A stretch of DNA of 64,000 nucleotides from the NCBI RefSeq assembly GCF_964188315.1, contig NC_135658.1, positions 75,454,001 through 75,518,000 on the forward strand. Reading direction: 5' to 3'. Source of the DNA: Podarcis muralis (Eukaryota). The notes under the pieces are model-generated. The model was not told where the DNA came from and searched no databases. It was given only the letters and a program-made list of their open reading frames with translations. Position 1 is the stretch's first letter; each line of letters begins with the position of its first letter. Both the position numbers and the translations under genes were made by a program. This document shows positions 20,340 to 27,912 of the stretch, piece by piece.

Positions 20340-20612
20340 TAATGCGTAGTTGAAATCGTTGTGCGCCAAGCGCCGAGCAGGGAGCAATTACTTCCTGAAT
20401 GAAAGCGCAGCGTGGCGCTTAATGAGACAACGAGGAGCCTGCGAGGTGCTGATTGGCTCTTCTTCCGAGGGGAAGTTTGTTACAAATAAAGATGCTTCTC
20501 GAGTTCGGGAAAGTCAGACAAAAGCCGACCAGCAACGCGGCTGCCTCGTGGGCTTGGACTGAAGATGCAGAAACTGTGTCAGAGAAAGCCCAGCCTGTCT
20601 CGGCCGCTGAAA
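20340..20612 (+). promoter_or_regulatory. NMS: Probable NMS promoter/5' UTR (locally CpG-rich)
   Basis: CpG enrichment immediately upstream of the NMS signal-peptide ATG; TSS not determinable. Confidence 0.5.
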
Positions 20613-23600
20613 ATGAAACGGCACGCGCCTCCCTTCCCCTTGATCTTCGTTATCTACTGCGTTTGCACCGCACGATTCACCTCAGGTAGGAGCCGCGTTC
20701 CCCACAATGTGTATTATTTTAGATACTTAAGACTTTTTATACAGCGTCCTTCATTATGTCTATGGATGGACGATCTGGAAAGTTTACAGCAGATCTGGGA
20801 AAAATGGAAGAAATGCTTCGCAGGTTTCCTGTCCGTCTAACGAGAGGTTTCTTGGTTGTAAGCCAAGCTTACTTCTAAGAGGAAACTTGCCCAGCAATCT
20901 TGCGCATGAGCGAGTCAGAATCTACTGCTGTAGCAAGTAAACAAAAAAAAGGGGGCTTCCTTTAACTTTTACTAATCTGGCTCAGTCTTTAAGAAATGAG
21001 CAGTAGCTTCCCCACGCGCACAACTCAACGGCGGTTTTTGCGTGAAGTGGAAGAATCCTCGCCTGTGGAGGGAGGGAGCATTTGGGAAGTTTTCCTAATC
21101 TAGTAGTAATCTAAGAGTAAGAAGGCTACGAGCTTTTGCCACAGTGGATTAGGGTTTCCACCGGGGTCTTTCTCCTGAAAGAGGAGGAAAGTTGTAAATG
21201 GAAGAGCGGCCAATCACTTAAATAGGAGAAGCAGAAGTTAGAGCCTGCAAAATTTCTCTCTAGATGAAGCTCCACGTGGTCAAGGGGGTTTGTTTTTAAT
21301 AGTACAGTTAAAAGGATCCGGAGACGGTTCAGAAGCTCCAGCACCTGCGGTGCTCTCCAAGGTGCTGAAACGAGGATGACCGTCCCGTCTCTTTATAAAA
21401 CGTGTTGTATTTAGCACAAAGCCTGAGGAAACGTAGGTATCGGGACACAGATTTAAAATAAAACTTAAGCGTGTGTGAATTGTGAGAAGGGTGGTAATAA
21501 ATAGATGTTAGGCTGGTGTGTGTGTGTGTGTGTGTCTGTTTTCTCTGTGAGAAAACTATGTCCAGTTTCATCGTCATCTATTTATGCCATTCTGATCTAC
21601 CGACTATTTTTAAAAAAAACTAATCAAAAGAGGCTAATTATCACTGTACTGTGTAATAAGTTTTTAAAAATGTGCACATACACACTCAAAGAGTCAACCG
21701 AATACAGTACTACAATTCTCTTAAGTGCCTTCTGTTGGACTTGCCCTGTCTTTCTTTAGATCTTTATGCAATTAAGGCCCGTTAATTAAACCCATGCTGT
21801 AGTGTATCTAATGCTCTCTTACTGTTTCACTTTAACAGGATTTCCACAGCCCTTTGATGACTATCTAGGCGAATCAGACATTCCTAAAAGCAAGGTATGC
21901 AAACTTTTAAATAAATTTCCATGCCTGTGCTTGGAACACCTATCCCTGAATTCTACCGCTATTATAGAGGGAAGACAGCCTGGTATATGCCTGATGCATG
22001 TAACAAGAACAATTGGTTGCTGCGTCCCCATGTTCACTGTAGGAACAAAATCTGTTGATCTAGTGTATATATAAGCTAAAGAAAATCTTCAAAAATGTTG
22101 CCAATATAATAAACTTTCCGATTTCTCTACCCCACTCCCTCCACTTCTGATTTAGAGACTAGCATGGTGTTTCTGTCAGTAGATGTCTGAACAACCCCAT
22201 GCAAAAATAAGTTGTAATAAATTTTCAGTGGTGTAGATTAGGGGTTTTCAAAGTTTCTATCCCCGGGGCAGACATGAAAGGGTTTGAGGCCCACCAGTCA
22301 CAAAATGGAGGTGTTGTGAGCAGTGGATGGAAGCAGAGTTTGACATAAACACGACTGACATACTTTTATTCTGATACGTAATCACTCTTTGTGGTGGCAG
22401 GGAGTTTCATAGTTCACCATTACTCAAACTAAATAAAGACTCTGGAGTGTGATCCTGTCAGCACATCATGTCTCTGCTCAAACATCTGCACTGGCCACTG
22501 ATATGTTACCAGGCCAAATTCAAGGTGTTATTAGTCTATAAAAGCTTCATTAGCTTGGAACCAGTTTACTTGGGGAAAAAACACCTTATCCTTTATGGGC
22601 CCACTAGACCACCTTGATCTGTTAGAAGTTGCACTTTTAATGTTTTGTTTGACTCTTGCGGCAGCATTCTAAATTAAATAAAAATTAATTTTATGGCCAC
22701 AATCAGACATGGTGATTTTATATCAAAACAACTGCAAAATATGTAATGCTTGACTAACTATGTTTGAAAATAATGTATATTAGAATGATTTTTTAAATTG
22801 ATGTTTGTATAATTACCTCTTTTTTATTATTATTTGCTTCAAACACATCAATAATTAGTTTAAGCTATTTTTGTCTTCTAGATCTGCCGTTCTGTTATGG
22901 ATCTTTGTAACTCCATGTTTAATGGCATGCAGATAGATGAGGTATGATCCGATTCTTTCTTTTCTCTGAAAACTCTGTCACAGTATTTATGTAGTTAAGT
23001 AATCATCTATCCTCATGTAATCTGATATGCTTCTCCTCACTAGGAAAATAATCAGGAAATATATAAAAGAGTAAGTATTTACCTTTCTTTATAATATGCA
23101 CAATACCTGTTTTTCGTTAAATAATGCAACATACTAAAATAGCTCTTTCTATGCAGTTTTTATTTCACTACTCCAGAGCTCAAGATCCAACATATCCACT
23201 TAAAACCGGGGTTAGTATTTTAACATAAGCATATTTTATATTTTATAGATCACAACATACAAAATAGTATAGAACAGTATATAAAATCTTTCACGTGCCT
23301 TGAGTGTATTTATTAGCAATGCAAGTCTATGCATGTCTGCTTGGAATTAAGACCCATTGAAACCAATGGTGCTTATTACAAAGGATTTGTGCATAGGATT
23401 GCAACTCAAGTCCACAAAGGGCAGGCTGAACCTTAAGCCAGGCAAATAATGTCAAATAAGATTTATCTCACATCTGGACCATACATTTAAATCGCTCTCA
23501 TACCTCTTCAACAGTCCAGGCTTCCCCCAAAGAATCATGGGAACTGTAGCTGTCTGAGAGGTGTCCTAACAATTCTCAGGACTCTTACAGTTCCCAGTAA

Positions 23601-23900
23601 TCTTTGAGGGAAGTCATGATGGTAAAAGTGGTATAAGAGTGCTTTAAATGTACAGTGAGGAAGTTACCAGGATCTGAAAAAATCTTGCAACTAGATTCAT
23701 AACTGCCCGGTGGGGTTTTAGACAGCCACCAATGGCACACACTCCCTTCAGTGTAACATGGGAACCATCTATCAAAGAGGGAGGGATGAAAATCCATTAG
23801 CCTAATACAACCCTCTCTTTCAAACAGTTAGTGAATGACTTTAGCCACAAAAAGCCTTAGCAACGACTTTATGAAATATTATATTATATTATTATTATTA

Positions 23901-23946
<46 letters not shown>

Positions 23947-26900
23947 TAGTATATCTCTGTGTGTATACATATATAATTAGTAATGGTTATTCACGTCATT
24001 AAAACAATGGCAAGAAGTGTCCAGAATCACAGAATGGGCCAATGCATGTTTGCCCTGAACAGACTTAGTTCTATGGAGCTTTATGCCTAGCAAGTGCGTT
24101 TCAGATTACAGCATGAGGGATCTGCTCCAAATTACCCAGCACCTCTGCACTGTTCTACAATCCTGGCAAAGCCCCCAAGAGATGGTTTTCTGGCTGCATC
24201 TGAAACTTCTTGATAAACTTATTTTGGGACTTCATATTTTGAATGAGCCAGTTCCTTATAAAGTCATCTATGTTGAGATGATGTTACTGGTAGATTAGGA
24301 ATGTCACTCTGCCAGTGAACCATATAGCTGTCATCTAGGCTTTACACATTTATTTTTCTAATTTTTATCTTTGCATAAAATTGGTGTTCATGATATCTCT
24401 TTGTTACAGTCTTTCCCTGTGCATCCTTTAATGAGCCTTGCTCCAAAGCTCTCGGAGAGGAGAATGAGAAGATTCCTTGATCCTGTATGCACTCGCTTCA
24501 TCCATAGTATTTTGTGGCACAAACACTTCATTTTGACTTTTTCCTTTTCTTTTAAAAAGCCATTGTACTGGTGGTAAATTGTGTGCATTTGTCTACTCTC
24601 CTTTCCTCCTTATCTCCCTTTCTTTTTCTTAAAATATTCTACCATTCCGCCCCCCATGAATTTCCTTATTGTATCCCATTTTTAAAGTTTATTCGAAGTA
24701 AGTCACAACCATCACTGTTGATATGACTATTCCTGTTAGTTAATTCTTCTAGTGTTTGTGAACTGCTAGGCACATACACTATCCCTACCCAAAGGATGGT
24801 CAAAATATCCAGTATCACTCCTGTATTGGTGCTGAATGCTGAAGCAACTTTGCAAAGGGCTTTTGCATGCAGGAACATACTGCACTGTAATATCCTTAAC
24901 TGGTAGAATAATTCATTCCCATTGCAGTCAATTGCAACATTTTGTTGACTGACATCTGTAGGAGACTGGGTGTAGCAGATACAAAAAAACCCCCAACAAC
25001 TCTGTAGCAATGTAAACTACCAGCTGCATCATTTGACTAGTTTAACATTCAGTGAAAATGTAGGGAATGGTACTAGGAACAAATTTACAGAATAAATAAT
25101 AGCACTTTCAAAAATCAATACTAAGATCTAACTTTCCATTTGAGATTTGGTGTTGTGCTCAAGAGCATGATCACTCCATTTCCATTTAAGAAACAGAAGC
25201 ATGCGCTATACACGTTGCTTGACCAAAGAAAAACCTCAGATGAATTCAAGCTGTTTAGCATTCTCTTTCTGTTTCCAACTTTGCCTGTGGTTTTATGTTT
25301 CGAATGCTTTAGCCTAATGTCATGTACTGGAGCAGTCTGCTAGCTTCTGCTGAAAGACATCAACCTATGAGATGATGAAATTAACATGCACTATCACCTT
25401 GCAGGAATCTCAGCTTGCAGCCGAAGAATTCGGAAAGAAGGTAGGCTTAAAATGCTGGCATTATCGTGCATATGTGTTACAAACAGCTCCCAGTGCTCAG
25501 TTAATTTGTTTTGCCACCCTGTGAGCTGTCTGGGTCAGCATATCAAAGAGACAGAAGGCAAGGAATGGCAGGGGTGATGCCAGCAACACAGTAAATGTTT
25601 AAATGCTCTGCCCTTTGCTTCTCCTACCTTGTGAGTGAGCACGGGGTAGACTCTTTATACATTCAAAACAGACATAGCTATGATGGTTCATAAGAAAAAT
25701 GGTAAGGGGGGGGACTCACCCCAAACCAGGCAAAGATTTGCTCAATTTGGGGCAATTTTGCCCTTCCTTAGCAGCCCTCGGAATGCCATCCCAAGTTGTT
25801 CAGGAGCCATCTCTAACCTTCTTAATATGCTTCATGAGGGTCACAGTGTCATCTCTGTCTTCCTCTTCTCCTTGTTCCTATTTCTCTGTTGGTGGTTGCT
25901 ATACTAAGGCTGCAGTCCTAACTTATCCACCACCACCCAGCTGGTGGGGCTTTTTTGGAATGGCAGGGCCACCAATGCATCTGAAGCCCTGCTGTTCAGA
26001 AAGTCTGTGGTGGAAGAAGGAGTGCCAACTTGATTAAATTATTGGGGGGGGGCAAGTAAACCCTGCCCCACATAATCGACCACGTGATGCGGTGCAGGGC
26101 AAGATTTGAATGGCAACGCCCATCAACTTTGGGGAGCCTGGCCCCCTCAACTGTTTTATGGGGGGACGGGACCTCGGCCTCCTAGGAGTTGGCTCCTATG
26201 TGCGGAAAGCAGAGGAAAGGATGATGCGCCCAGGTCCATGCTCCTGGCTAGTGCACCAACTGGACCTGACCCTGTCACACAACAGCAGTGAGACCAGAGC
26301 TCAGGATCCAATGGATCGTGGACCAGCTCAATCCTGCCTCTTCCTTGCCCCAGAACACCTCGTTGTGGTGTTTTCCTGACATCATCCAGACATTCAGCAG
26401 GTGGAAGCGGGAGGTTAGAGCCAAGGGAATGATTCTTGTGTCACTTCCATTGGTAATGGGTAGCAGGAGCCAGTTTAGTCAGGAGAGCTGGGTGGAGGGA
26501 TAAGTCTATTCATTCCAACTGCCCTCCCCAGTCTAGTTTAAATGGGGGGAGTTGGATTGCTTTGACCAGCTGCCTTCCTATGCATATTTACTGGGAAGCG
26601 ATCCCCGTTTTGAGCAGACATGCATAAGATTGCACTTGAACACACCTGGGAGGAAAGTTCTGGCTCTGCTGGCTGCAGAATCTCTTGGGCATTTCCCTGC
26701 CTCCATTGGGCCTCACTACACTGCAATATTTCAGAACTCCTGACCTATGTCAAAGTGCACAATAGGTTTAGAAACATTTGGCCAAGTCTGCTTTATTTCT
26801 TTCCTTTTACAGGACAGCTTGGATACCTTGGGCCGACCCTTTTTTCTCTTCAGGGTATCTAATTTTATTTGTTCATTATCGGGGGGTGGGGGGGATTGAA

Positions 26901-27688
26901 CCATACATAGTTTCCCCTCTTGGTATAAAAAAATGAAAATGAAAAACGCATTTATAAGCCCTGCCGCCCGAAACACACACCATTATATCAGAGCTTTCCA
27001 AACTGTGTGTCGCAGCACGTTAGTGTGTCGGCTACAGTGTGTAGGTGTGTTGTGCAAACGCTGTCTGCCTTCCACCCGGGGGATGGAAAGGGGTTGATTT
27101 AACCTTCGGTTTGCTAGTAAAACTGAATTCTGTGTCGTGAAATGATGTGTCTCCAACATGAAAAGTTTGGAACGCTCTGCATTATGTGATACTAGCATGT
27201 GTTAAAATCTACAGTTCACCCTACACTGTGGTCTCACTGTTTGGCAAAGAATTGCCCCCCACCCACCCTTGCCGTGGCTTCAGTGCAACCTATATGTTGC
27301 TTATATGGAGGACTGCAAGCAGTAGAGGGCACCTGCCCACAGACCAGCATATATGAATGGGAGGCATGGAAAGATGACCACATGCCTGCATGCTGACAAA
27401 ACATTCTGACAGCCAGTCGGAATGCAGCGCAGTTGTTCTAGTCAGCAAAGTGATGCTCTTTTGCAAATTCTCACCTTTGAATGACCTTGAGCTGGAGAAG
27501 CTCCTGGTGTGCCGACAAAGTCAAATCTGCACCTCTTATTTTCTGCTGTTCACTTTGTGGCAAAGCTGGAGATTATGCTTCTCAGTGTTATTTCATGAGT
27601 AACACTGCAGTGCATTTAATTTATTTTTCTTTGCGTGTTAAATTTTCAGCCAAGGAATGGAAGGACAGTGGATAATGGAGGTGAATAG
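20613..27688 (+). CDS. NMS: Neuromedin S precursor (~153 aa if dead exon 3 is skipped)
   Basis: AG/GT-bounded, frame-compatible exons: 20613-20685 (MKRHAPPFPLIFVIYCVCTARFTS-G), 21839-21894 (FPQPFDDYLGESDIPKSK), 22882-22941 (ICRSVMDLCNSMFNGMQIDE), 23044-23070 (ENNQEIYKR), 23157-23210 (FLFHYSRAQDPTYPLKTG), 24410-24484 (SFPVHPLMSLAPKLSERRMRRFLDP), 25405-25440 (ESQLAAEEFGKK), 26813-26854 (DSLDTLGRPFFLFR), 27650-27688 (PRNGRTVDNGGE*). Diagnostic FFLFRPRN-G-R core present. The extreme C-terminus is uncertain because of a possible donor at 27681. Confidence 0.95.
22156..22200 (+). pseudogene. NMS: Degenerate (dead) NMS exon 3
   Basis: Intact polypyrimidine tract and AG. Reads RLAWCFCQ*MSEQPH, alignable to human NMS exon 3 (QLAYCLSQWAPLSRQPK). 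TAG at 22180-22182 replaces Trp; donor position reads CAT|gcaaaa. Confidence 0.8.
22437..22615 (+). mobile_element. Degraded L2/CR1-group LINE fragment in NMS intron
   Basis: Decayed match to the LHW..LP..FKVLLL.YKA region also seen at 46617-46859. Confidence 0.55.
23881..23946. repeat. (ATT)n microsatellite, imperfect
   Basis: Directly visible. Confidence 0.95.
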
Positions 27689-27784: not shown

Positions 27785-27912
27785 NNNNNNNNNNNNNNNN
27801 NNNNNNNNNNNNNNNNNNNNNNNNNNNNNNNNNNNNNNNNNNNNNNNNNNNNNNNNNNNNNNNNNNNNNNNNNNNNNNNNNNNNNNNNNNNNNNNNNNNN
27901 NNNNNNNNNNNN
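27785..27912. other. Assembly gap (128 N)
   Basis: Run of n, 97 nt after the provisional NMS stop. Preceded by a (TTTA)n tract and followed by a 10-bp duplication (aatgacatgg x2). Confidence 1.

Follow-up and report, generated by a model that had tools for sequence, protein, structure and literature searches.

A short segment in the second intron of the neuromedin-S (NMS) gene of Podarcis muralis resembles an exon of that gene and contains a stop codon, which raises the question of whether it is a dead exon, an element that still captures transcripts, or an error of the assembly or of a single allele. The preliminary description of the window (the whole stretch of 64,000 nucleotides analysed here, to which all positions refer) read the segment as exon 3 of NMS, skipped constitutively and without loss of frame, and named as alternatives a truncated isoform acting as an off-switch and a null allele. 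Our analysis indicates that the segment is very probably a pseudoexon, the relic of an ancient 51-nt phase 0/0 NMS cassette exon that is now constitutively skipped in lacertids.

The neuromedin-S gene and its precursor

The whole NMS coding gene lies on the forward strand at 20565-27688 and consists of nine live exons, as judged by an exon-by-exon match to NCBI isoform X1 (P0121). Exon 1 occupies 20565/20613-20685, and its open reading frame is 100% identical to P. muralis neuromedin-S. Exon 2 (21839-21894), which ends in FPQPFDDYLGESDIPKSK, has its donor joined straight to exon 4 in RNA, as described below, and exon 4 (22882-22941; ICRSVMDLCNSMFNGMQIDE), placed by alignment as well as by RNA, supplies the acceptor of this skipping junction. 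The matches to P0121 continue on the same strand with exons 5, 6 and 7 (23044-23070, 23157-23210 and 24410-24484) and exons 8, 9 and 10 (25405-25440, 26813-26854 and 27650-27688), beyond which there is a run of N at 27785-27912. The nine exons other than exon 3 are open, each with its AG and GT sites, and form consecutive pieces of isoform X1, in agreement with what had been proposed from the letters. The human NMS gene has 10 exons (PMC3514618).

Translation from the ATG at 20613 yields a precursor of 153 aa with intact peptides, the length that had been predicted, and the start chosen by NCBI, the in-frame ATG at 20565, extends this to 169 aa. The upstream ATG (20565-20612) puts 16 residues, MQKLCQRKPSLSRPLK, ahead of the signal peptide; the annotations of turtles, frogs and some mammals contain comparable upstream N-terminal extensions. 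Exons 9 and 10 encode ...GRPFFLFR and PRNGR on either side of their junction, in which FLFRPRN is followed by Gly-Arg, the amidation signal. These residues, and likewise the processing sites (the KR that closes exon 5 and the RRMRR of exon 7), fall in invariant or near-invariant columns of an alignment of 32 sequences. When P0121 and P0009 were compared with Pfam by hmmscan, no family matched at E<=1, the NMU family included; we attribute this miss to the great shortness of the model and the motif and do not count it against membership of NMS.

Within this precursor, exon 3 coded for part of an N-terminal propeptide spacer, upstream of the first KR; this part belongs neither to the NSRP-like peptide (FLFHYS...) nor to the NMS peptide at the C terminus. 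In NMS processing, it is not known to give rise to a bioactive product. Given that the bioactive peptides are unaffected, we expect no physiological consequence of its loss.

Two further observations concern the gene outside exon 3. Intron 6 contains a high-copy repeat at ~23500-23650, where the summed contig depth in DNA run X2 is ~8900 as against ~8 elsewhere. In L. agilis, isoforms X1 and X2 run past the donor of exon 8 into the intron (...FGKKVGLKCWHY...) and do not reach the NMS peptide exons 9-10; this read-through is probably a gene model built from unspliced RNA.

The relic and its orthology to a live exon

The relic lies on the forward strand at 22156-22200, where 45 nt read RLAWCFCQ*MSEQPH directly behind an intact acceptor AG (22154-22155) and its polypyrimidine tract; every coordinate given for it in the preliminary description was correct to the base. 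A search with the public P. muralis protein P0005 as query gave 208 NMS precursors, ranging from lungfish to mammals, of which we aligned 32. In this alignment a 17-residue exon 3, with the consensus RLALCFSQWTELSDQPQ, follows the last residues of exon 2 (...PKSE) and precedes the ISSSVMDLC... block ISSSVMDLCNSMFNSMQIDE. The same exon occurs in Hemicordylus, Pogona, Anolis, Sceloporus and Salvator, in pythons (Liasis), colubrids (Pantherophis), rattlesnakes (Crotalus) and two geckos, and beyond squamates in several turtles, a newt, and frogs and toads, and its mammalian counterpart begins QLAYCLSQW. The relic falls in the alignment columns of the squamate and mammalian exon, as expected from the homology to NMS exon 3 that had been claimed for it, and the comparison across squamates suggested at that time also allowed the loss to be dated by bracketing (see below).

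We then compared the window with the genomic loci of Hemicordylus (L001), P. raffonei (L002) and L. agilis (L003). Among the lacertids, the stretch spanning intron 2 (window 21800-23000) aligns from end to end; between lacertids and Hemicordylus the relic is the sole alignable part of this stretch beyond exons 2 and 4 (E 7e-7). In the four-way DNA alignment the relic lies base for base on the Hemicordylus exon, cag/AGA CTG GCT ... CCT CAG/gtaaa (L001 1857-1907), in which the slashes mark the splice sites. A six-frame scan with the Hemicordylus exon peptide scored the corresponding segment at 52 in P. raffonei and at 62 in L. agilis, with the next best match at 34 in each. In the window itself the relic was the top match across all 64 kb, and the window contains no second copy of exon 3, which bears out the statement that the intron has none. 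It scored 37, and the runners-up, located outside the gene, scored 35; the peptide match in P. muralis alone is only marginally above chance.

That the resemblance to exon 3 could be fortuitous, the segment never having been an exon, would fit this narrow lead of 37 over 35, and also the outcome of searching the window with the 51-nt Hemicordylus exon alone, which gave only non-significant matches and E-values by blastn, blastn-short and tblastn. Given these non-significant short-query matches, the homology is argued through the chain of lacertid alignments and the six-frame scan. The scores of 52 and 62 in the two other lacertids, against a background maximum of 34, are hard to reconcile with coincidence, as are the agreement in position, strand, phase, length (51 nt) and AG/GT sites with the Hemicordylus exon and the fact that, besides exons 2 and 4, the relic alone aligns across the two groups in this stretch; we give chance resemblance practically no weight. 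By this chain of syntenic alignments we regard the relic as established to be a true ortholog of the 17-residue exon.

Measured against the live exon, the relic carries three lesions, all of which had been described from its letters. A TAG stop (22180-22182) stands in place of a tryptophan codon that is TGG in Hemicordylus and that encodes an invariant residue in all 17 distinct exon-3 peptides, being changed in lacertids. The shortfall of two codons reflects a true deletion of 6 nt, as comparison with P. raffonei, L. agilis and Hemicordylus shows; it is specific to P. muralis and maps to 22185-22186, with a placement that is ambiguous within a few bases, P. raffonei and L. agilis carrying extra bases of the TGGAAC type. 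Finally, the former donor is GC (22201-22202, within gcaaaa at 22201-22206) in P. muralis, and GT in P. raffonei, L. agilis and Hemicordylus.

Skipping of the relic in RNA and rival readings

Four sequencing runs were mapped to window positions 21600-23850, namely the DNA run X2, the RNA run X21 (a single-cell library) and the bulk RNA runs X23 and X24. In X21 the joint 21894>22882, which links exon 2 to exon 4 and had been singled out earlier as the junction to look for, was crossed by 69 reads with 32 different start places. The flanking junctions carried 101 reads from exon 4 to exon 5 and 36 from exon 5 to exon 6, and a further 74 reads bring exon-1 sequence into exon 2. Depth was zero in all bins from 21904 to 22815; neither the relic nor the AATAAA behind it (22216-22221) had reads in X21, no joint led into 22156 from the acceptor, and no molecule ended there, including near 22240, where 3' ends had been suggested as a check. 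Inclusion of the relic was 0 of 69, giving an upper 95% bound of ~4%, in X21, a single-cell library of unspecified tissue and the one RNA run in which the gene was expressed. The bulk runs X23 and X24 contained no NMS reads, and only the repeat at ~23500-23650 was covered in them.

The annotation of the gene in lacertids agrees with these reads. Exon 3 is missing from all 19 annotated isoforms (19/19) of P. muralis (two releases), P. raffonei, P. lilfordi and L. agilis, which read DIPKSK and then IC(R/H)SVMDLC directly. The proposal of constitutive, frame-preserving skipping is thus upheld by the 69 junction reads, the zero depth over the relic and the 19 isoforms. Isoforms that omit exon 3 are also annotated in Salvator, two turtles, a frog, an alligator and a lungfish in our alignment, which fits a cassette exon that can be dropped harmlessly. 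Transcripts bearing the relic carry a premature stop and could be cleared by nonsense-mediated decay, and steady-state RNA may miss them; rare inclusion of the relic could still occur, hidden by this decay.

A separate observation from the same library is that 71 reads pass from exon 5 to exon 8, compared with 36 to exon 6, which indicates that the main transcript in X21 is isoform X5 (P0001), which omits exons 6-7. This isoform lacks the FLFHYS... peptide and RRMRR, and the KR of exon 5 directly precedes ESQLAAEEF...FLFRPRN.

Two rival readings bear on whether the relic is truly dead. The relic might be in use as a poison exon or intronic polyadenylation unit, its acceptor at 22155 capturing transcripts and lowering NMS output, and in this case the AG and polypyrimidine tract, intact in all three lacertids, the AATAAA 16 nt downstream and the ability of nonsense-mediated decay to conceal such transcripts from steady-state RNA would all have a ready explanation. 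Yet the depth across 21904-22815 is zero and no ends are listed, while the flanking junctions carry 69-101 reads, and none of the annotated isoforms uses the relic. The hexamer on which a truncated isoform had been suggested is one of five AATAAA in the 987-nt intron 2 and reads AATAAT in L. agilis, and nothing points to its use. The lesions, moreover, vary by species, and divergence over the 45 sites appears intron-like, giving no hint of selection for an exon that carries a stop. Neither inclusion, nor 3' ends, nor conservation of the element, by which a poison exon or intronic polyadenylation unit would be recognised, was found here, and we consider such an off-switch very improbable.

The lesions might instead be assembly errors, or the rare null allele of one individual in a species that normally has a working exon 3. 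No support for this was found, though P. muralis does vary nearby (at 22232, 22233 and 22250, in the A-run at 22203, and as Arg or His at 22889). In the DNA run X2, which comes from another study, a 1935-nt contig over 21612-23547 is identical to the window at 22156-22202, so that the TAG and the GC for which a check in raw reads had been proposed are both unchanged, and no indel relative to the window occurs at the deletion site. The contig differs from the window by SNPs at 21724, 22232, 22233, 22250 and 23492 and by one A fewer at 22203; it represents a different haplotype with the same TAG, deletion and GC, which means that the lesions were not introduced by the assembly and are not confined to a single haplotype. 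P. raffonei also has the TAG, the individual sampled for RNA, homozygous for the other allele at 22889, skips the relic as well, and the proteins of an older P. muralis annotation release lack it too. The null-allele reading offered earlier is contradicted by these findings, and we find an artefact or a private allele scarcely credible.

Decay of the exon in lacertids and comparison with known systems

The four genomes show the exon in successive states. Hemicordylus has a live exon of 51 nt with TGG and a GT donor. L. agilis retains 51 nt with an open frame, RLAWCFCQYMELSDQPH, and both AG and GT, and has TAT at the tryptophan codon; P. raffonei has 51 nt with the TAG and a retained GT; and P. 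muralis, in the window, combines the TAG with the 6-nt deletion and the change of GT to GC. The lacertid versions have L>W, S>C, T>M and Q>H in common, at positions that are near-constant from frogs to snakes. Including the tryptophan, lacertids carry five replacements, which points to faster change along their stem, and other squamates in the alignment depart from the consensus at 0-3 positions.

These states suggest that the TAG was probably already in place before Lacerta and Podarcis split and that the open frame of L. agilis is a later accident, since the series TGG to TAG to TAT requires two steps as against three otherwise. The ancestral death of the exon rests on this one-codon parsimony together with the five unusual residues. 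Divergence from L. agilis amounts to 3 of 45 sites in the relic, 5-8% in introns and 3 of 272 sites in exons 2 and 4-7, a comparison that leans in the direction expected of neutral drift, with too few sites to be significant by itself. In Salvator (Teiidae), the transcript P0032 retains exon 3, which dates the loss to after teiids and lacertids diverged and before Lacerta separated from Podarcis.

A very recent loss inside Podarcis, with exon 3 still functional in some Lacertidae such as L. agilis, would account for the open 51-nt frame with AG and GT in that species. Against this, all three annotated L. agilis isoforms (3/3) omit exon 3, the changes L>W, S>C, T>M and Q>H, which make up four of the unusual five, also occur in Podarcis, and the invariant tryptophan is replaced by tyrosine, whose TAT codon is one step from TAG and two from TGG. 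We regard survival of the exon in L. agilis as unlikely, although it is the least improbable of the rival explanations.

These data allow us to propose a course of events for the loss of exon 3 in lacertids. The ancestral state would have been a conserved 17-residue cassette exon that several species, judging by their annotated isoforms, can leave out. On the line leading to lacertids its skipping may have become complete, after which the exon would have been left to drift. Five replacements at otherwise conserved positions would have come first, before the split of Lacerta and Podarcis, followed by the change of TGG to TAG, most parsimoniously in their common ancestor, with TAG becoming TAT later in Lacerta. 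The 6-nt deletion and the loss of the GT donor to GC would have come last, in P. muralis alone. In the present gene the spliceosome joins exon 2 (21894) to exon 4 (22882) with the frame kept, the step that the RNA reads record directly, and the expected product is the 153/169-aa precursor, in which every processing site and the FLFRPRN-Gly-Arg terminus are preserved.

The neighbouring exon has a history of its own. The 20-residue exon 4 (ISSSVMDLCNSMFNSMQIDE; window 22882-22941) is present in sauropsids, amphibians and lungfish and in none of the 12 mammalian NMS sequences compared. As mammals lack exon 4 and lacertids lack exon 3, the two groups show reciprocal losses of neighbouring exons, and the equal length of their precursors is coincidental: the 153 aa of both lizard and human NMS mask middle parts that are not homologous. 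The possibility that exons 3 and 4 arose as tandem duplicates was considered and rejected, as 1510 of 5000 column shuffles scored at least as high as the observed profile.

These two ancient adjacent mini-exons of the NMS propeptide hold one cysteine each. The second codon of exon 4, TGC (22885-22887), encodes cysteine in lacertids (IC[R/H]S) and serine in all 21 other distinct peptides (21/21). It is conceivable, if rather doubtful, that this gain compensates for the cysteine lost with exon 3, restoring a pair in a propeptide with a disulfide-dependent role in sorting or folding; were this so, the dead exon would mark a constrained structural rearrangement rather than a neutral loss. Two observations concern the same exon. 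The lungfish isoform that omits exon 3 has DCC within exon 4, and in P. muralis a G>A change at 22889 (Arg>His, ICRS to ICHS) is present in all 128 X21 reads (128/128), a coding polymorphism whose His allele is that of the older P. muralis proteins (P0005) and of L. agilis.

The locus preserves the death of a mini-exon in a neuropeptide precursor in three lizards, in which the exon is open but unused, stopped, or stopped with a deletion and no donor. No paper on the exon structure of reptile NMS was found in the literature searched. Public lacertid gene models of NMS are correct in skipping the relic. The practical value of these results is chiefly for annotation and for studies of exon turnover.

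Set beside known systems, the relic corresponds to the live exon 3 of mammalian NMS, the human gene included (QLAYCLSQW...QPK), which occupies the same alignment columns as RLALCFSQWTELSDQPQ and the relic; that exon is live and coding, whereas the segment in P. muralis is interrupted by a stop, has lost 6 nt and its GT donor, and is absent from mRNA. With poison exons and intronic polyadenylation switches it has in common an intronic, stop-containing segment behind a usable acceptor, with an AATAAA close downstream. It differs from them in that no inclusion or 3' ends were seen, its donor is lost and its conservation does not appear to exceed that of the intron, and from polyadenylation switches in that its hexamer is neither conserved nor unusual. 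The closest parallel is with the exon losses by constitutive skipping of former cassette exons that comparative studies of exon gain and loss in vertebrates have catalogued. The marks of a lost exon are present here, namely orthology to a live outgroup exon, real genomic lesions and absence from mRNA (in one expressing sample). As in the catalogued cases, the relic has a symmetric, conserved ortholog that is optional in relatives; skipping leaves the frame unharmed, and the skipped copy then gained a stop and an indel and lost a splice site. This is an ordinary lineage-specific exon loss in a propeptide spacer, already skipped in public gene models, and it differs from those cases not in principle but in that its stages are visible in three close relatives and that its neighbouring exon was lost in mammals.
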